Below are positions 26,702 through 64,000 of a stretch of 64,000 bases of DNA, in pieces. Under the pieces are notes generated by a model, which saw nothing but the letters and a program-made list of their open reading frames with translations, was not told where the DNA came from and made no database searches. The number at the start of each line of letters is the position of its first letter. Within the stretch, counting starts at the first letter, position 1. This stretch comes from Piromyces finnis finn (Eukaryota; Fungi; Neocallimastigomycota): contig MCFH01000023.1 in assembly GCA_002104945.1 (NCBI GenBank), positions 1 through 64,000 of the forward strand, written 5' to 3'. The position numbers were made by a program, and so were the translations under genes.

Positions 26702-28259
26702 TTTCAGATAGAGAGAGTAATCGAATTGATAATCAATTAAATGGAAAATTGTTCATTTGATAAACATTTTTCATTTTGTAGTAAATTACGGATTAATTGA
26801 ATAATATCCATTAATTATTAATTAATTTTATATTTAATAAAAATTAAAAAATTATTTTATTAAAATATAAATTATAATGTATACTAATCATTTTATAATT
26901 GTGGATATTTATTTATTAATTTATCATTATTATGTAAAACTATAAATAAAGATATGATAAATATAAGTAAATATTTAAATTATAATATATTATATATTAT
27001 ACTAACTAGTTAAAAATAATATAGTTAACATTTTTTAACAACACTTTTTTGATAAAATTATATAAAAAAGTATTATATTTAAAGATAATATTGATTTAAA
27101 AATAAATAGTTTATTTAAAAATAATATTAATATTTTTTATAAATTAAAAGTTTTTATTTAATAGTGTAATAGTTCAACTTGGTAATTACAAATTATTATA
27201 AAATATATAATATAATATTTACATCTATATTAAACATAGTTTATTTATATAATAAATAAATGATGTTTAAATGTATTTACATTCATTTGAATTATAAAAT
27301 AAAATATTAAAAAATAAAAGTTTAGTTTAATTAAATATATATCATAGTTTCTATTTAATGTTGTTATTGTATTTAGCATGATGTAATTATATGTACATAT
27401 TATTTTTAATGAATTATCTATTATGATAATATATAAATCTATAAAAGAAAATATTAAGGTTATTTAAATATAAAATTAAATCTTTCAATAAAATAAAATA
27501 TTACATATTTTATAAATATATAAATAATTATTTCATTAATACGAATAGAATGAATAGAATAATTATTATTTAGTTATTATATAATAATAATTATTTTATA
27601 AAAATTTAAAAATATTAAAATATCATTTTAAATATTTTATTTTAATTGTTTATTATTAAGTTATAAAGAAAAGGTGTATTAAATTTATAATATTAATTTA
27701 TTACATTGTTCTACAAACCTACTTATCAATTTATGTATTTGCATTAATTTAATGTATTTGTATTAAATATTTAGTGGTCTAGAAATGAGCCATTAATAGT
27801 ATATAAGAAAGAAAAATTTTCATACATTTTAAATTTTTCATAGCTATCCTATATTAATAATTTTAATATATTAATAAACTTTAAATATTATAAAATAAAC
27901 ATGAAACAATACTATTATTAATATTAAAATAATTAAATAATTAATGGATTATTTAATTTTGATTTATAGAATATTCTATTTATTAAAGTAATAAATATCA
28001 GTGTAACATTATATTAGAATATGATTGGTTGTAAATGTTTTAAAAAAATTTAAAAAGTTAATTTCTTTTTTATCATAATTTAATCAAGAATAATTCAAAA
28101 AGTGGAATTATAAAAGAATATTTATGAAATATATTCGGGGACTGTTAAAAAATATTTAATTTATAAATACATTATTAAAAATCAAACTAAATTTTATACA
28201 TAATATTGCTATATTTATCCTAAAAATTTATTTTATATAATTTTTATAAAATAAAAATA

Positions 28260-29006
28260 CTGAAAAACATTATTTTCGTGGTGTTTACATATATATTTTG
28301 TATTTTGTTTTTTCAAAATGGATATACCCATATTATAACTATTGAATCAGATAATATTCCTTATGAATATATTTATCATTTAAATGTGACTACTAATTCT
28401 ATTGAATGCGTATTTTGTGATACAACCATATGTAAAGGTTCATATTATTTTAAAGCTGACAGATATTTTAATTTACCATTTATTGAAATTCCAATTAATA
28501 CCAATACTTTACGATTAAACGACAACAATACAGATTGCAAAATATGTAATCGTTCGGAAACCCAATTCAACAGGTATATTTTGCATCCATATGTTATGTA
28601 TCATAATCCTACTATAAGCAATAATACTTCAACTGAATGTAATAAAGATGCTCAATGTTTTACAAATAAATGTGTAAACCATACTTGTAAATTCAATGAA
28701 AATAATATTATCACACGTCTTCGATATGGTCGTAAGGGAAAATTTGTTGGAGATCCTTGTGTAAATAGGGATGATTATTCAGAAGGTGAATGTAATGGAG
28801 AGTGCTACATACCTATGAATGAAGATGAAAATAATGAATTAGATTCTGCTATACGTTTTTTGTACTGGTTGGGATTTTTGAGTTCTATTGCAATTCTTGG
28901 AATTTTTTATTGTTGTTGTTCTTATATAAAGATGCTAAATCTTATAAAGAATTTAATAATATTTAAATTAAATCTATTAAATATATTCAATAAATTTAAT
29001 ATGTAA
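28260..29006 (+). pseudogene. Cys-rich membrane protein family member (ATG replaced by CTG, altered C-terminus)
   Basis: ECNKDAQCFTNKCVNHTC motif, TM helix, CCC tail; CTGAAAAACATT at 28260 versus ATGAAAAACATT in the paralog at 21027. Confidence 0.7.
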
Positions 29007-29283
29007 AAGAAATTTAGTGAGTATTTTTTAAAAATAAATTTTATTAACAATTTAAACTATAATGAAATGTTAATTTCATTATTAATTTAATTACTTATAT
29101 ATAAACTGATATTAAGTATTATAATATATCAACATTATATATTAATATAATATAATACTTAAAATATTATATAAATATAAAATGATTATTTTTATGTTTT
29201 CATTTATAATAAAAATAAATTATTCAAGATAACTATAAATATTAATTCAACTAATAATAAATTCGAAATTATAGACACATAAA

Positions 29284-29364
29284 ATGCTATTTTTTTCAGC
29301 TATTATTGCAATTGTGCTAGTTAGAAATGTGTAAAAAGATCAAGGCCAATATTATGAAATGTAC
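29284..29364 (+). pseudogene. Truncated 5' end of a PI-PLC-lectin gene paralog
   Basis: MLFFSAIIAIVLVRNV...KDQGQYYE matches the start of the gene at 62994. Confidence 0.8.
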
Positions 29365-30504
29365 TTTAATGAAAAATTAAATTAAACAGGATCAATTTTC
29401 CAGTAAATATAAAGTTTAGATAATAAATTATTAAAAATTTGAATGTTAACACTTGAAAAATCACATTTAATTTCATTTTTATATTGTTATTTTTTATATA
29501 TTTTATATTATTATTATCTAGAGAAAATAATATAAAGAAAGATATATTATATTAAAACGATATAGTTCTATACTATATTAAAAGAAATAATAGAAACAAA
29601 TAGAATATTTAATCTTTTTTTTTTTTTTTTTTTTTTTAAAATGAAGAAAATAAAGAAATACTTATAGTTTCATATTTTAATAAAACATTGATAAATCTAT
29701 TATGTTTTATAATTGAAAACCGGAAAATAGTTTGTAAAGAACATGTATTGAGACAAAATTATAAATAATAATGAATTTCTGTTTACATTTATTTGAAATT
29801 TTGTAAAAATTCCATAAAGTAAATTCTAATTTCTACACAAATTGTTCTATTTACAAATCATTATTTTTAATAAATATCTTCCTTCAATTTCTTTTCTAAT
29901 AATCTTTGAAAAGAGAAATCGAATTATTTTTATTTTTTATAAATGTATACAATAATTATCAAATATTTTTATATAAATTACTTTCCTTTATTATTAAAAA
30001 AAAAGATTTTTGTGATTTTATTTAAAATTTATATTAAATATAATTTCTAAAAAGGAATATTAATTTAAATACTATTTATTAAATACTAATGAATATATAT
30101 AAAACATTACGGTCATTTTAATATTTTGTCCTTTAGTAAGAATAAAGATATAAATGAAAAATTATAAATAAAAACTTAAAAAAAGGTATATAATCTTTAC
30201 AAAAGAATTTTAATTTTTTTTTTTATTTTTCATTCTTTACTTTTATTTATTTTTTATTTTATTTTTTTTTTATATTATTATTTTACATTTATTATTTTTT
30301 TTTTATTAAGTATATAGTTATTAATATTAATATAAAAATAATAAATTTTATATTATTATCAATAATTAATTATTTATTATACTACTGTGTTGTTTTTATA
30401 TATATATTTGATTATTTATATTATAACTAAATTATTAAAATATTAATAAATTTAGTAGAATCTTTTTAGATATATGTATATTATTTACATAGTTTTCCTT
30501 AGAT

Positions 30505-32274
30505 TTAATTACATGCTAATTTTAACATTTCTCCAAATTTGGCTCTCTTCTCTAATACACTGTTACTTCGGTCTTTAGGGATTTCATACTCTAAGACGAC
30601 TTTATTAGAAGCTTCCTTAACTGATTTAGCACTTTTTAAAGCACTAAGAACGTCTTTATAATTATTATTAAGTTCTATCCAGAAGTAGTCAAGTTGCATT
30701 TGAAGATCACCAATACTCTTTTTTTGCTCTTTAGCATATTCAAGAAGACCCTGTTTACGTTTACTTGAAGTCCATTGTACTAAACCATATCCAGCTGAAT
30801 CAGTTGTAAATTTTTTGTATGTTCCATTATCAACTTCCTTGGTATATTGTTCATCAGTTTTTCCAAGACTTTTTTCGTAAATGCCTTCAAGATCATTTGA
30901 TCTTAAACGAGATTCGGCATAAAGATTTCCAATCATACCGGCAGCTCCATAAGCATTTTCAATTTTACTTAAAAGGAAGCTCCAAATGTATGGTGCATTT
31001 GGTAATGCTTCTTTGTCAATAGTTCCGTAACTATTTTTTGGGGAACATTCCTTAAGAGTAGAACATTTTCCAAATTCTGATTGGCATCCAATACCGCAAT
31101 GAGTATTTTCGGTTCCACACCATCCATACTGACTACAGCATTTACCGGATGGGCATACAGTGTATCCATTCTGAGGTCCGCATTTACCATTCGTAGAAAG
31201 TCCAGTACATGTACCAAATTCAGATTGACATCCTTTTGAAAGTTGGCAATGGCTGTCTTCTTTTCCACACCATCCATATTCACTACAACAATAGCCTGGA
31301 CTACATTCACCATATCCTTTACCACATCTACTTTTTGTTGTAGGAGATGTACTAGTTTTAGTTGTAGTCGTTCTAGTGGTTGTAGCTTTAGTTGTTGTAG
31401 CCTTGGTTGTAGTAGTCTTTTTTGTAGTAGTAGTGGTTGTAGTAGCTTTAGTTGTAGTTGTAGTTGTAGTTTTAAAAATGTTATTTGTGGTGGTGGTGGT
31501 GGTTTTAGGGACGGTACTAGTTATTAAAGAAATATTACATTGACCAAATTCGGATTGACAACCAGCACCGCAATGAATACTTTCGGTTCCACACCATCCA
31601 TACTGACTACAACATTCCCCAGATGGACATACAGTATAACCATTTTGTGGACCACAACGATTATTTGTAGAGATACCACCAATACACTTACCAAACTCAG
31701 ATTGACAACCATTTGAAATTAAACAGTGATCATCAGATTGACCACACCAACCAAACACACTACAACAAAAGCCAGGATCACATTCCCCATATCCTACACC
31801 ACATTTACTCTTGATTGAGGTAGGTTGAAGAGATGTATTGGATTTAGTAGTTTGAGAAGAAATATTAGTTGTTGTTGATGGAGGGATGGTATTAAAAGTT
31901 AAAGTTGGTTGTAAAAAATTATTACACTGACCAAATTCCGATTGACATCCGGTACCGCAATGAATACCTTCGGTTCCACACCATCCATACTGACTACAGC
32001 ATTCCTCAGATGGACATATAGTATAACCATTTTGTGGACCACATCGATCATCTGTAGAGATACCACCAGTACATTTACCAAATTTTGGTTGACAGTTATT
32101 AGAGATTAAGCAATAGTCATCGGATTTACCACACCATCCAAATTCACTACAACAAAAGCCAGGATCACATTCACCATATCCATCACCACATCTACTTGTA
32201 AACGTTGGGGCAGCCGATATAGATGAAATGGATAGAATTGATGAAATGGAGAAAATTAAATTAAGGTATTTCAT
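30505..32274 (-). CDS. Secreted protein: six hevein/CBM18 domains plus a C-terminal phage-tail-lysozyme-type domain (589 aa)
   Basis: Signal peptide MKYLNLIFSISSILSISSISA, 6x CG..CCS.(F/Y)GWCG...C..GCQSEFG.C, Thr-rich linkers, then GAAGMIGNLYAES..GYGLVQWT..QLDYFWIEL..YEIP. Confidence 0.9.
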   Translation of the reverse strand: MKYLNLIFSISSILSISSISAAPTFTSRCGDGYGECDPGFCCSEFGWCGKSDDYCLISNNCQPKFGKCTGGISTDDRCGPQNGYTICPSEECCSQYGWCGTEGIHCGTGCQSEFGQCNNFLQPTLTFNTIPPSTTTNISSQTTKSNTSLQPTSIKSKCGVGYGECDPGFCCSVFGWCGQSDDHCLISNGCQSEFGKCIGGISTNNRCGPQNGYTVCPSGECCSQYGWCGTESIHCGAGCQSEFGQCNISLITSTVPKTTTTTTNNIFKTTTTTTTKATTTTTTTKKTTTTKATTTKATTTRTTTTKTSTSPTTKSRCGKGYGECSPGYCCSEYGWCGKEDSHCQLSKGCQSEFGTCTGLSTNGKCGPQNGYTVCPSGKCCSQYGWCGTENTHCGIGCQSEFGKCSTLKECSPKNSYGTIDKEALPNAPYIWSFLLSKIENAYGAAGMIGNLYAESRLRSNDLEGIYEKSLGKTDEQYTKEVDNGTYKKFTTDSAGYGLVQWTSSKRKQGLLEYAKEQKKSIGDLQMQLDYFWIELNNNYKDVLSALKSAKSVKEASNKVVLEYEIPKDRSNSVLEKRAKFGEMLKLACN

Positions 32275-34493
32275 ATTTATATATATATATATATATATAT
32301 AGTTTTTTATTTTTTTTTTTAAATAAAATAAGAATTTTTTTATTTTTTTATAGTTTCTAGAAAAATCAAATAAAAAATAAAGTTTATTATTTAAATATAT
32401 AATAAAAGTATTGTTTCTTATTAATTTTTGGTTTGTGTTCATTATTGAGGTAAAATTCTTTTACAGTCTAGACCATTAGAAAAAAGTATACTTTTTTTTT
32501 TTTCCATATCAAAGTTTAAATATTATAAAATGTAATGATATTAATTTATTTAAAAAAAATTTTTGATCTAAATAGAATTTATATTTATTATAAAATTTTT
32601 TTGTTTTTACAATTATCATTATTATTATTATTATTATTATCAATGGTTTAATTCAATTAAAATGAAATCTATCAAGTATTTTAAAATATTTATTCTATTC
32701 TTTAAATATTCTATATAAAAATAGATAATACTAATAATGATGATAATAATAACATTGCAGAAATGTGAATATTAAACTGAATATAAACTCGATAGTTATC
32801 TATATATAACTATAAATTATAAAAATTATTGCTAATTCAAAGGACATTAATTTATAGTTATTTCATATTAATTATTTATTCTTATATAAAAGTATTTATT
32901 AAAAGTAATAATTATTATAATTAAGGTTTAAAGTATAAAAAAAAAAAAAGTCGATTTTTTATCTTTTTTTTTTTTTTTTCTGGATAGTTATTTAATTATC
33001 ATTTTACCATATAAAGAAATTATTATTTATAATATATAAGATATATTTATTTAGTCTATTAAATAAATTATAAAATGTATTTAATAAATAATTATCATAA
33101 AATAGCAGACATATAAAATATTAATGAACAATTTCCATTTGGATTTGTACATTTTGTATAAAACAATTACATTTAATAATATTTAATAGTAATAACTTTA
33201 ATATATTAATATACATGAATTGTATTAAAAAATTATTAAAATGTTTTATATAATTTTATATACAAATTTAAAAACTATTTCTTAATATATTAATAGGATT
33301 CAATTATTTTTTTTATATATATAGAAAATTACATCCACCACCATAATTTTATTATAAATATTAATTTCTTAAGTAGTATTTCTGAACGCTAAATTGAAAG
33401 ATTTAAACACAATCCTTTCTTTTACCAAAGCTATTAATTTTCCATTAATAATTATACTTGAATTATCATTTGTACCTTTAAACCAAGTTATACTACAATC
33501 AATCGATTAACATTCGCTAGTTAAATGTCTTTAATTAATGTAAAAATAATAGCTATAACCCCTGAAGCTATCTCGTATCTTGGTTTTAACTAGTGATTTT
33601 ACTAAAATTTATTTATAATCTAATGAATGATCCGTATCTGATTTAGAAAGTGACGTGTTTTTTTTTTTTTTTACAAAACTTTTATTAGTAATGTTAATTT
33701 AAACTGTAATTACTATTTAAAAAAAAACATCAAAGACTATTGGTGTAAAGTAAAAAAACTTTAAAAAATTTGCATTTAAATTTTATGGACATTTCATAAA
33801 AAAAATTTTTTTTTATTTTCTATTAATTTATTTATTTATCAAAGTTGGGTACAAAATAAATTAAATGAAAAAATGAATATTCCATTTTTTAAAAATTAAT
33901 AAACTTAAAAAAGTTAAATTTATGTAGGTTTCATATTTATTACATTATTCACATTATTATAAATAATGAAAATTATTTATTTTATATAGTTTAAATTTTA
34001 AAAATTAGAGATAGATAGGAAGGTAATGTCAAGTTTTAACTAATAAAAAATAAATATAATAATCATTTAACACAAAAAAATAAACCTATTTTTTTATTAT
34101 GATGATGATGATGTACTGTTAAAAAAAATTAGAGTTTATTTTAATTTATCTAAATTAATGATTAATTAAATAAACAAATTTTTCTTTTTAATGACCTATA
34201 AAATTAATTAAATCATAAATTAATTTAATTATAAAATTAATATTTAATATAAAATAATATAAGAAAATAAAAGTTTGATATTTTATTACTATTTTTTAAG
34301 AAAATATATAAAATGATAAGTCACAAAAAAAAAAATTTTTTTTAAAAAAAAAAAAAATAGATATAAATCAAATTAATAATAATAATAAAAAAAAAAAAAA
34401 CATAAAAAAATATATATAAAAAAGTATATATATTTTATATTTATAACATATATAATTAAACTATATAAAATAAATATAAATAAATTACAAGTT

Positions 34494-60489: not shown

Positions 60490-62994
60490 TCAATTATCAT
60501 TTAATTCAATAGAATTCTCATTCCAGAGATTAAAGTAATATAATTGAGTATTATTATTAAATTCATTACAATCAGTCATAACTAAAGTATTATTAGTATC
60601 TAATGTAATACACATATTTTTATATAATGGAGACATAATATAATTACTATTACGATAAAATTTAGTTCTTTCATTTCCACAAATACCTAAAATTAAGGAA
60701 AGATCATCGGCAAGCATTAGACAATGATCATTATTAAATTTTAAGTGGAAATAATCATCATGTGTATATGGAACATCCCAGAGAAAATATTCTGAGTAAT
60801 CACATTCATTCAAGGTAATATTATCATTAAGTACACCATTGGAATGAATACATTTATTTGGATTAACAGATGAACAACAATGATATCCTAATACTTCAAA
60901 TGAACATCTTTCATACCCAATACCACACCATTCACCATTTTCTTTAGCCCAGTTACCATAATTATCAACTTTTTCAACTTTAGCATATTGATTACGGCAA
61001 CAGTTATATCCAGCCTTAATATAATTTGAAGAGCAAGTTAAATATTGATATCTTGCTGGATTTATAATTGTGGGTTTAATTTGGAATTTACTATTTAAAC
61101 AGTAACTACTATTGCGTGAACAAATATTTCCATTCATAATACTAAATTGCACATTTTGACTATTATCACAATAATTTACTGATAATTTATTATTAGAATA
61201 GCTTAAACATTTAGCATCATATGAAGATTTAATGTTATAATAATTACCTATTGGCATAATACGCCATTTGTTCTTTTTGTTGTCAACGCATTTGAAATTG
61301 GTTTTAATAAATTCTACTTCATATCCTTGTTGAGTTTTCACCGTTCTACGTTGTAAACAAGCATTTTCTGCAGATACTATATAATAATCAAAATCTGTAT
61401 ACATAACAAAATCATCTATTCCAACAATATTAGTGGATTTATTTCTTTTGACTAATGTAATTGTACCCATACTTTTGTATATTTTACGTACTAAATCATT
61501 AGTAGGATAATCTAGAATAAACCAATGGTTATGAAATTTTGTATCTTCTTTAATATAATTTGATAAAAAATAGTTCATTACATCAGCATTATGTTCTAAA
61601 CTTATTAAATTAAACATATCAGCTTGTATGTTCATGAAATCAATAGTAAGAGTTTTTGGATTTTTTGAATCATAAAAAGAATTAGTAAAATTATTATTTG
61701 CAGCATATTCAATATCATTAAGTATAATTGGAACTTTATGATCCAAGAGATTTTCAACAAGTTTTGGTTTTCCTGTTTGTAAATCATAATTATCTTGAAC
61801 AAGTATATTATGGTTATTATTATGAATATGAGGATAACATTTTTTCATATATTCTTTATCAGAAACTGGATATTCTTCACAACTACCCATATTTGGTATA
61901 TTAATTTCATTTCCTATATATTCATCTATATTATTACCATACATCCATTTTTTACGCGTTAATAAAATTATTTTGCCTCTTACATCACCAAGTTTTGGAA
62001 AACTTTCCTTTCCACTATAGAAAAACTCTTTATATGATTTGAAGAAAGAAGTAGGAACAGTTTTTAATATACTGAGATTGGCAATTGCTTTGTATACTTC
62101 TTCATATGTTTCAAATCCATATGGAATTGTAGTTATTGAACCATGCATATAATCAGGATATTCTATGGGTTTACCTACTTGAATATTTTAATTTTTTAAA
62201 TGAATAATAATGGTTTCTCCTGGATTATTACCTAGAAATACAATAGCTTCATCAAATACATCTTTTAAATAATATTTCTTTCCTGTATCTCTATTCATAC
62301 AATCAAATACAAGGTGCGAAAGATATATTTCCTTATTTTTGTTTGTTTCAATTCTTATATCAAAATATCTGATTCCATTCATCATTTGTCCAAAAATATT
62401 TAATTCTTGAGTTCTACCAAGACTTACTCGAGCATTATAAATATTAACACCAGTATCTCCTATTGCATATGTTCCACTATCATAAGTTCCAGGAATGTTA
62501 AGTTGATTAATTTGTATATTATCATCCGTAATTTTAGTTATTCATTGAATATCGTTGTCATTAATTTTAAATGTACACCATCCATATTCAGTTAAAGCAC
62601 GCTTATCTGTTAAATCAATATCATAATAAGGAACCTTATCTATGGTAAGCATCTTATTGTAAGTTTCACCGCCAATTCCAGTATTTGTAAAATAACACTT
62701 ATTTCTATTAATATCAACATAACCTTTAGTCTTACAATCACCAGGATCATCTCTACTTCTTGGACCAAATTTCTTATCAGTATGCTCATTTCTAAGATAG
62801 CAATCATATATATCATCAGTAAAAATACCTGTATCACATTGTTTACAAATATACACTTTACTATAATCATCTTCACCAATAAGTAAATAAGCTTTAGTTG
62901 TTGTACCATCTAATTCATAATATTGATCTTGATCTTTTACACCCAACACATTTCTAACTAGTGCAATTGCAATAATAGCAGAAAAAAATATCAT
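60490..62994 (-). pseudogene. Secreted PI-PLC X-domain + ricin-type lectin + fungal dockerin + lectin protein; one 834-codon frame with two in-frame stops
   Basis: INQLNIPGTYDSG, GIRYFDIR, ETIIIHLK, GDVRGKIILLTR, QDNYD; dockerin GYNCC..VDNYGNWAKENGEWCGI; stops at 62542-62544 (TGA) and 62188-62190 (TAA). Confidence 0.85.
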
Positions 62995-63349
62995 TTTATG
63001 AGTCTATAATTTCGAATTTAGAAATTATATTATTTATTGGATTAATATTTATAGTTATCTTAAATAACTTTTTTTTATAAATTAAAAACATAAAAAATCA
63101 TTTTATATTTAAATACATATTTAAATAATATCTTATTTAATTATTATAATATATATATATATATAATGTTTATATTTATATATAATGTTTATATATAATA
63201 CTTAATGTTAGTTTATATATAAGAATTAAATTAATAATGAAATTAATATTTCATTATAGTTTGAATTGTTAATAAAATTTATTTTTAAAAAATACTCACT
63301 AAATTTCTTTTACATATTAAATTTATTGAATATATTTAATAGATTTAAT

Positions 63350-64000
63350 TTAAACATTATTAAATTTTTTAGAAGATTTAGCATCTTTATATTTAAAAAA
63401 GCAAGAACAACAACAATAACAAATTCCAAGATTTGCAATAAAAATCAAAAATCCCAAACAATACAAAAAATTATATAAAGAGTGTAAACTACGTAATTCA
63501 CCATTTCCTTCAACTTTATCTTTTCCTTCAACTTCATCAATAGGTCTGTAGCACTCTCCATTACATTCACCTTCTGAACAATCATTATCATTCACACAAG
63601 GATCTCCAATAAATCTTCCCTTACGACCATATCGAAGACGTGTGATAATATTATTTTCATTGAATTTACAAGTATGGTTTACACATTTATTTGTAAAACA
63701 TTGAGCATCTTTATTACATTCAGTTGAAGTATTATTGCTTATAATAGGATCAAGATACCGAACATATGGATGCAAAATATACCTGTTGAATTGAATTTCC
63801 GAAAAATTACATATTCCGCAATCTGTATTGTTGTCGTTTAATCGTAAAGTATTAGTATTAATTGGAATTTCAATAAATGGTAAATAAAAAAATTCATCAG
63901 CTTTAAAACAAAATGAACCTCTGCATATAATATCCTAATTATATGCAGAGGGTTGTATAGGGTTGTATCACAAAATACGCATTCAATAGAATTAGTATTC
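63350..64000 (-). pseudogene. Cys-rich membrane protein family member, 5' end outside the window, frameshifted by a 32-nt insertion
   Basis: Near-identical core to ORF 28278-29006 (SNNTSTECNKDAQCFTNKCVNHTCKFNENNIITRLRYGRKG). Confidence 0.75.

Follow-up and report, generated by a model that had tools for sequence, protein, structure and literature searches.

What a chitin-binding protein of an anaerobic fungus does with a lysozyme domain of phage type, and how the fungus came by such a domain, are the questions raised by a locus of Piromyces finnis (Neocallimastigomycota). The window analysed here is the whole stretch of 64,000 nucleotides (nt) at positions 1 to 64,000 of contig MCFH01000023.1 (assembly GCA_002104945.1), and the locus is an open reading frame (ORF) on its minus strand, at 30505-32274. 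A preliminary description, made from the letters alone, had read it as an intact, intronless gene for a secreted protein with three A-B pairs of hevein-type chitin-binding (CBM18) domains followed by a phage-tail-lysozyme-type domain. It had proposed a horizontally acquired muramidase, anchored on the fungus's own chitin wall to kill or harvest rumen bacteria, or else repurposed as a chitin-active enzyme. The gene is real and intact, and encodes a horizontally acquired lysozyme domain of the gp13 type fused to a fungal hevein-lectin array. It is fairly probable that the product is a secreted modular peptidoglycan glycosidase, likeliest a muramidase, of phage-endolysin descent, which acts on bacteria.

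Gene structure and transcription

The ORF comprises 589 uninterrupted codons, ends with a stop codon at 30505-30507 and forms an island of 32-38% GC between flanks of 10-15% GC (Table 1). An ORF extended upstream, from 32442, gains AT-rich low-complexity codons only, and the Met at 32274 is favoured as the start because the homologues begin with the same MKY.N(I/L) signal peptide. No credible splice joint was found, and 30488-32265 is covered, free of mismatches and gaps, by contigs assembled from three public runs, which supports a gene without an intron. The preliminary reading of the gene as intact and intronless therefore holds, and that of its product as secreted agrees with an N-terminal sequence which, by itself, resembles a signal peptide.

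The exact 589-residue protein is absent from every protein collection searched, because the public gene calls split the gene. On both contigs that carry it (the second copy is described below), the calls on record cut the one ORF into a 247-residue CBM18 protein, a 120-residue piece and a 176-residue piece with the lysozyme domain only; the first of these is the NCBI entry BCR36DRAFT_308236, flagged as partial. We argue that the three-way split is an artefact of annotation, since the frame is open throughout, the run contigs tile 30488-32265 free of mismatches at near-constant depth, and the homologues of Piromyces sp. E2 are equally fused.

The depth of perfectly matching contigs over the ORF is 950-1860 in run X1, 270-410 in X2 and 4-7 in X3, while the flanks have a depth of 0-100 in X1. 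A DNA library would not yield a depth that is limited to the gene and dependent on the run, so these runs look like RNA, and the gene is probably transcribed. In an X1 contig an Illumina adapter directly precedes position 30488, 17 nt past the stop codon, which may mark the end of a very short 3' untranslated region or a polyadenylation site. All four runs contain one contig that joins 31089 to 31742 across 31 unrelated letters, probably a related transcript with another linker or fewer CBM18 modules.

The lysozyme domain

Pfam PF18013 (Phage_lysozyme2), against which the preliminary description had recommended a HMMER comparison, matches residues 426-579 at 95 bits (cut-off 28.2 bits; E = 5.8e-27), and PHROG 20388, 'endolysin', is matched with E = 5e-51; no NCBIfam model matches the protein. 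The sole significant solved relative by sequence in the PDB searches is the N-terminal domain of phi29 gp13 (E = 9.5e-4 when the sequence alone was the query, 5e-9 for a profile of 52 sequences). An AlphaFold (AF2) model of the domain, built on the family alignment (predicted local distance difference test, pLDDT, 96.7; predicted template modelling score, pTM, 0.91), superimposes on gp13 with Z 16.8 and a root-mean-square deviation of 2.3 Å over 143 residues at 27% identity, with a Foldseek probability of 1.0. Next in rank by structure come 8b2h, a fungal muramidase of GH184 (Z 9.4), then chitinases of GH19 (Z about 8), and lytic transglycosylases and lysozymes of the lambda and goose types (Z 6-8). 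The domain does not belong to GH184, as TtGH184 (8b2h) resembles it at the level of the fold only, with 12% identity and no sequence match in the PDB searches; nor is it a GH19 or GH23 chitinase, these reaching Z 6-8.5 at 9-14% identity, far below gp13.

Glu454 in the GNLYAES motif is aligned to Glu45 of gp13 in GNMQSES, which ends helix 2 and is the proposed catalytic residue of that enzyme (PMC10394673). The position is occupied by Glu in all 264 bacterial and phage relatives and in 18 of the 19 fungal copies. The exception, a paralogue from Piromyces sp. E2 (P0219), has the sequence GNLYVKS, in which Lys replaces the catalytic Glu, and may be a pseudo-enzyme within the family. Profile, a mostly helical modelled fold and catalytic Glu together support true membership of the C-terminal domain in the gp13/phage-tail-lysozyme family. 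The domain type named by the preliminary description thus stands, with GNLYAES at residues 449-455 and GYGLVQWT at 495-502 where it had placed them, and the failure to match lysozyme-fold profiles that it had allowed for did not occur, both PF18013 and the gp13 fold being matched.

Two cysteines, Cys410 (31045-31047) and Cys588 (30511-30513), flank the catalytic domain. A pair of this kind occurs in some fungal relatives (P0145, P0218) and is absent from the bacterial relatives aligned; it may form an added disulfide that contributes to extracellular stability.

Origin of the domain

The domain is 55-63% identical to thousands of bacterial and phage-type proteins in which PF18013 is accompanied by Amidase_2, CHAP, SH3, LysM or NlpC/P60. 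In species-representative genomes, where an alignment query found matches and a single-protein query gave none, the best ones lie in metagenome-assembled genomes (MAGs) from the guts of goat, sheep, roe deer and other animals; the matching genomes are mostly Lachnospiraceae, Oscillospiraceae and other Clostridia, cultured Butyrivibrio included. In cultured phages the homologue is the endolysin, whose gene adjoins that of the holin; examples are Faecalibacterium phage FP_Lagaffe (55.6% identity) and Acutalibacter phage Fontainebleau.

In a maximum-likelihood tree (66 rows, LG+C20; support given as ultrafast bootstrap/Shimodaira-Hasegawa-like approximate likelihood ratio test, SH-aLRT), all 19 fungal sequences form one clade (99/91) nested among bacterial and phage relatives, with the P. 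finnis protein in an 11-member subclade (99/96). The sister of the fungal clade (91/89) consists of a metagenome protein and locus L003; the enclosing node has a support of 95/96, and the intermediate nodes are weak. L003 lies on the 61-kb contig JAFURY010000089.1 from a roe-deer reticulum, both ends of which repeat the same 6.46 kb exactly, 53.2 kb apart. Its genes include a diversity-generating retroelement (DGR) reverse transcriptase, a tail fibre and, in this order, a holin, an amidase+PF18013 endolysin and a serine integrase; the contig (loci L002 and L003) is thus a complete temperate phage genome. Its assignment to a Succinivibrionaceae MAG is probably due to mis-binning, since the endolysin is of a type typical of Clostridia phages.

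The G+C content at third codon positions (GC3) is 0.199 in the lysozyme part of the gene and 0.188 in the CBM18 part, while it is 0.49-0.63 in bacterial homologues and 0.74 in FP_Lagaffe. Tree and codon use support one transfer from a herbivore-gut phage or Clostridia endolysin, which would be old enough for full amelioration and would have been followed by diversification. Two independent transfers were also considered, as a first tree with few fungal sequences gave 77% for one clade, and were rejected with the 19 sequences and their single clade. Contamination is dismissed in favour of a resident, ameliorated fungal gene, since the lysozyme domain and CBM18 share one ORF, GC3 is about 0.20 in both parts, the flanks are as AT-rich as given above, and the gene is present on two contigs of the assembly. 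The horizontal acquisition postulated by the preliminary description is thus upheld, the phylogeny with bacterial homologues that it asked for having yielded a single fungal clade with a phage-containing sister and the codon use being fungal. The fungal protein is descended from endolysins and is not itself an endolysin: the gene is chromosomal in the fungus, has an ankyrin gene and a long interspersed nuclear element (LINE) as neighbours, encodes its own predicted signal peptide and is accompanied by no holin.

Horizontal transfer has already been published for the bare domain. In the survey of Ciach et al., ORX49608.1 and ORX49610.1 of P. finnis are entered as xenologs, with Clostridium nearest to them and "without clear function in fungi"; both models, of 180-181 residues, contain Phage_lysozyme2 only and were predicted without a targeting peptide (bioRxiv 10.1101/2021.12.02.471044). 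As lysozyme-only models have neither signal peptide nor CBM18, Ciach et al. reported neither fusion nor secretion; their two models may stem from this locus or from another.

The fungal family

Proteins combining PF00187 (Chitin_bind_1) and PF18013 are represented by at least 12 entries of Piromyces sp. E2, annotated merely as "CBM18 protein", and by several others whose contigs, about 1 kb long, stem from metagenomes or run assemblies. The three such contigs inspected have flanks of 7-20% GC (except one 15-base flank) and a GC3 of 14-22%; AT-rich flanks and low GC3 are the grounds on which the short contigs are assigned to anaerobic fungi. As the fungal relatives bear one to three CBM18 modules, the array of six would be an elaboration of P. 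finnis. The named fungal matches come from P. finnis and Piromyces sp. E2 only, in word-based and length-limited searches among gene models that fragment the gene. No named family member surfaced in these searches from Neocallimastix, Anaeromyces, Orpinomyces or Caecomyces, though CBM18 proteins of several of them did, and no absence is claimed.

Two pairs of Piromyces sp. E2 proteins, P0129/P0165 and P0128/P0216, report equal longest contigs (486,945 and 126,759 bp), which suggests that the members of each pair are clustered in the genome. P0128 opens with a second, partial lysozyme domain, as if its model had merged two tandem genes.

The hevein modules

Pfam PF00187 matches six stretches of the protein (175.8 bits against a cut-off of 27.8, E = 1.7e-52), and each of the six 40-residue modules fits the 8-Cys hevein pattern. 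They form the three A-B pairs seen in the preliminary description, and these recur in tandem in the DNA itself, with 87% identity between pairs 1 and 2 and 75-79% between pair 3 and the others. In hevein, the binding site for N-acetylglucosamine (GlcNAc) is made up of Ser19, Trp21 and Trp23, with Tyr30 as the third aromatic residue. The GlcNAc-site pattern CCS-x-(F/Y)-G-W is present in all six modules, while at the position of Tyr30 module 1 has Tyr and the remaining five have His; binding of chitin or of GlcNAc oligomers by the modules is predicted from the conserved pattern. Among solved structures, the modules come closest to lectins with several hevein domains, namely lectin-C of pokeweed (E = 8e-21) and wheat germ agglutinin (WGA; E = 4e-19). 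In these fungi CBM18 is also fused to serpin, subtilase, CotH, leucine-rich repeat (LRR), CAP and deacetylase domains, and given so many unrelated partners it would be expected to have a general role in wall display or anchoring.

Proposed function and its alternatives

In the course of events proposed here, a phage or prophage of herbivore-gut Clostridia would have supplied the gp13-type (PF18013) domain from its endolysin. This domain would have entered the Piromyces lineage by a single transfer, shed its bacterial partners (amidase, CHAP, SH3, LysM) and acquired a signal peptide of eukaryotic type along with fungal lectin modules of the hevein/CBM18 kind, which in P. finnis would then have been amplified to three A-B pairs. 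Outside the fungal cell, Glu454 would be the general acid that attacks the glycan backbone in bacterial walls, and the CBM18 array would gather the enzyme on a polymer of GlcNAc, in either the chitin wall of the fungus itself or the bacterial wall. If it is the own wall, the enzyme would be displayed on the surface, with the Thr-rich stalk holding it outward. Bacteria contacting the hypha would be lysed, be it in defence or competition or as a source of nutrients. The architecture, family, fold, conserved catalytic residue, phage/Clostridia ancestry and apparent transcription are observed, and from them we infer the peptidoglycan activity, the CBM18 ligand and the biological role.

The choice of substrate is guided by conservation. 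At least 85% conservation in the bacterial and phage proteins is reached by 73 positions, 53 of which are retained in at least 80% of the fungal copies, and all invariant positions are kept: W431, N450, Y477, T478, V481, Y486, F489, D492, G495-G497, Q500, W501, K507, Q527, E534, E564 and P566. The retained core covers the subdomain (residues 458-494) inserted after the catalytic Glu and ahead of the GYGL motif, to which a part in specificity is ascribed (PMC10394673). With the endolysin core thus kept, peptidoglycan would be the favoured substrate. As to the biological setting, CBM18, GH25 and GH73 genes of other anaerobic fungi are among those most induced in co-culture with a prokaryote (a methanogen), for which the authors suggest a role in physical association (PMC8665504); that study was not on the present gene, and by analogy the induction of CBM18 genes fits a role toward prokaryotes. 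A wall-tethered antibacterial role of the protein appears plausible.

Several points weigh against an antibacterial glycosidase. CBM18 classically partners chitinases. Since GH19 and GH23 chitinases share the fold (Z 6-8.5), chitin is a conceivable substrate. Crystals of gp13 bind GlcNAc oligomers (entries 3ct0-3ct5), and CAZy has yet to number the gp13 family, "due to a lack of functional information" (PMC10394673). P0219, with Lys for the catalytic Glu, means that some members of the family may be non-catalytic. Finally, the runs used for expression are presumed to be RNA, a label that is a guess, and were available as assembled contigs, not reads.

The alternative that survives best, tentative as it is, casts the hevein modules as a new aiming device in place of bacterial wall-binding domains; they would bind GlcNAc in the peptidoglycan or teichoic acids of Gram-positive bacteria, and the free protein would attack at a distance. 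The SH3, LysM or other wall-binding modules of the bacterial relatives are indeed missing here, the last CBM18 pair lies about 20 residues from the catalytic domain, there are paralogues with one or two CBM18 modules only, and WGA, one of the solved lectins closest to the CBM18 pairs, labels Gram-positive bacteria through the GlcNAc of peptidoglycan (PMC7333439). Binding of CBM18 to bacterial walls is, however, predicted by analogy with WGA, and the fusions of CBM18 to serpin, subtilase, CotH and LRR domains, for which peptidoglycan binding makes little sense, point to a generic chitin-wall anchor. Anchoring on the own wall and targeting of bacteria are not mutually exclusive: the layout, with four distal modules, a 70-residue Thr stalk and a proximal pair about 20 residues from the catalytic domain, is compatible with a wall tether and bacterial binding at once.

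A bolder proposal, which we regard as possible though rather unlikely, is that the Piromyces lineage turned one captured phage endolysin domain into a small secreted antibacterial family, with 12 or more paralogues in Piromyces sp. E2 and two or more loci in P. finnis, whose WGA-like arrays themselves recognise Gram-positive walls. If this is true, nature would have evolved a chimeric lysin whose targeting domain is eukaryotic, and this in a family of glycosidases that CAZy has not yet numbered.

It is improbable that the enzyme was neofunctionalised for chitin or chitosan, either of its own wall (in growth, zoospore release or autolysis) or of competitors' walls, with CBM18 providing chitin targeting. 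Besides the usual company of CBM18 and chitinases, the chitinases within the lysozyme superfamily and the (GlcNAc)n bound in gp13 crystals, all mentioned above, the near-fixation of Glu at the position of gp13 Gln54 could be cited in its favour. Gln54 is suggested to stabilise the substrate in gp13 and is a secondary, non-invariant feature. Its position is Glu in 18 of the 19 fungal copies, while among the 264 bacterial and phage relatives 251 have Gln and 13 have Glu, including L039, which is near the fungal clade in the tree. Glu is therefore not a fungal invention, and an active-site innovation of the fungi was ruled out on this count; it is read as a minority natural variant, apparently fixed in fungi, rather than as a pointer to a new activity. 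Identity to any chitinase is 9-14%, and since the fungal domain has lost none of the endolysin subfamily's invariant residues, those of the specificity subdomain included, a chitin-active enzyme would seem disfavoured.

A mainly non-catalytic lectin or sensor, binding GlcNAc glycans for adhesion to prokaryotic partners or for signalling, is very improbable, for although P0219 lacks the catalytic Glu and CBM18 genes respond to methanogen co-culture (PMC8665504), the Glu is intact here and in 17 of the 18 other fungal copies and the conserved core is largely kept, which is unexpected for a mere binding module.

Table 1. Features of the CBM18-lysozyme gene, all on the minus strand; positions are those of the window
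Feature	Residues	Position	Strand	Basis or remark
Whole coding sequence, 589 aa + stop, no intron	1-589	30505..32274	-	
Predicted signal peptide, MKYLNLIFSISSILSISSISAA, hydrophobic	1-22	32209..32274	-	cleavage site from sequence only; paralogues share N-terminus
CBM18/hevein module 1 (type A)	29-68	32071..32190	-	Pfam + 8-Cys pattern
CBM18/hevein module 2 (type B)	78-117	31924..32043	-	Pfam + 8-Cys pattern
Ser/Thr/Pro-rich linker 1, 40 residues	118-157	31804..31923	-	
CBM18/hevein module 3 (type A)	158-197	31684..31803	-	Pfam + 8-Cys pattern
CBM18/hevein module 4 (type B)	207-246	31537..31656	-	Pfam + 8-Cys pattern
Thr-rich mucin-like linker, 70 residues	247-316	31327..31536	-	site of 27-nt length difference from second copy
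CBM18/hevein module 5 (type A)	317-356	31207..31326	-	Pfam + 8-Cys pattern
CBM18/hevein module 6 (type B)	365-404	31063..31182	-	Pfam + 8-Cys pattern; about 20 residues ahead of catalytic domain
gp13-type lysozyme domain as modelled, about 180 aa	409-589	30508..31050	-	PF18013 match 426-579 = 30538-30999
Glu454, counterpart of phi29 gp13 catalytic Glu45	454	30913..30915	-	alignment
Glu463, at gp13 Gln54 position	463	30886..30888	-	alignment
GYGLVQWT motif	495-502	30769..30792	-	G-Y-G-L-x-Q-W invariant family-wide

Genomic context and second copy

The gene has an ankyrin-repeat ORF and a LINE reverse transcriptase as neighbours. That it is cargo of a long terminal repeat (LTR) retroelement was ruled out, as there are no flanking direct repeats within about 6 kb on either side. 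A second copy is found on contig MCFH01000069.1, 98.9% identical over the whole 6.5 kb compared, AT-rich intergenic DNA included (9 mismatches, the rest being indels). The comparison covered window positions 27505-34035 and MCFH01000069.1:181170-187700 (locus L085). The ORF of the second copy has two non-synonymous base differences and a 27-nt deletion in the Thr linker, and thus encodes 580 residues. This copy represents an allele (haplotig) or else a segmental duplication of very recent date.

Immediately downstream of the gene, about 1 kb of sequence (window positions 28428-29358) is 84% identical to positions 62914-63928 and overlaps an ORF without a Pfam hit (28278-29006); the two stretches are either a dispersed repeat or a paralogous small gene.

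Significance

Eukaryotes are already known to acquire bacterial and phage lysozymes. New in relation to the published survey are the corrected gene, a predicted-secreted fusion with six fungal lectin modules; a monophyletic and diversified fungal family, the nearest relatives of which are rumen-phage endolysins; the intact catalytic core of the P. finnis protein; and a fusion architecture within a glycosidase family without a CAZy number. Should the activity be confirmed, the gp13-type family would gain an expressible and assayable eukaryotic member, helping its assignment in CAZy, the antagonism between rumen fungi and bacteria would gain a concrete molecule, and lysins using a lectin array as the targeting domain would have a natural template.

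Comparison with known systems

The N-terminal domain of phi29 gp13 (PDB 3csq/3csr) shares with the fungal domain the PF18013 family, the fold, the catalytic Glu and the G(Y/F)GLVQWT motif. Nevertheless, gp13 belongs to the tail of the virion and has a LytM endopeptidase as its fusion partner, whereas the fungal protein is fused to CBM18, is predicted to be secreted by a eukaryote, has Glu for Gln54, and has a subdomain between the catalytic Glu and GYGL that is about 23 residues longer.

The Amidase_2 + Phage_lysozyme2 endolysins of gut Clostridia phages and prophages are the closest relatives (55-63% identity), with the same subfamily insert and invariant residues, and are the probable source of the fungal domain, as judged by sequence. 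They differ in acting from inside the bacterium with a holin, in carrying an amidase and bacterial wall-binding modules with neither signal peptide nor hevein, and in their GC3 (0.49-0.74 against 0.20 in the fungal gene).

The muramidases of fungi where a cell-wall-binding domain (CWBD) of SH3-like type is joined to GH24 or GH184 are likewise secreted proteins composed of a lysozyme-fold domain, a flexible linker and a non-catalytic binding module, and their muramidase activity has been shown experimentally (PMC10394673). In structure GH184 comes closest after gp13 itself (Z 9.4), with the catalytic Glu in an equivalent place. However, these enzymes belong to another sequence family (12% identity) and to Dikarya, not Neocallimastigomycota, and their SH3-like module binds peptides.

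A biochemical precedent is provided by the gp13-like MUR domain of PrgK, from the type IV secretion system of pCF10, for which muramidase activity was measured (bioRxiv 10.1101/2024.02.15.580431). Unlike the fungal protein, PrgK is bacterial and membrane-anchored, and cuts the producer's own wall in conjugation.

Finally, the PF00187 + PF18013 proteins of Piromyces sp. E2 belong to the same clade as the P. finnis protein and have the same order of a signal peptide, CBM18 and the gp13-type domain; they differ in the number of CBM18 modules, one to three against six, and their catalytic domain is 41-60% identical to that of P. finnis.

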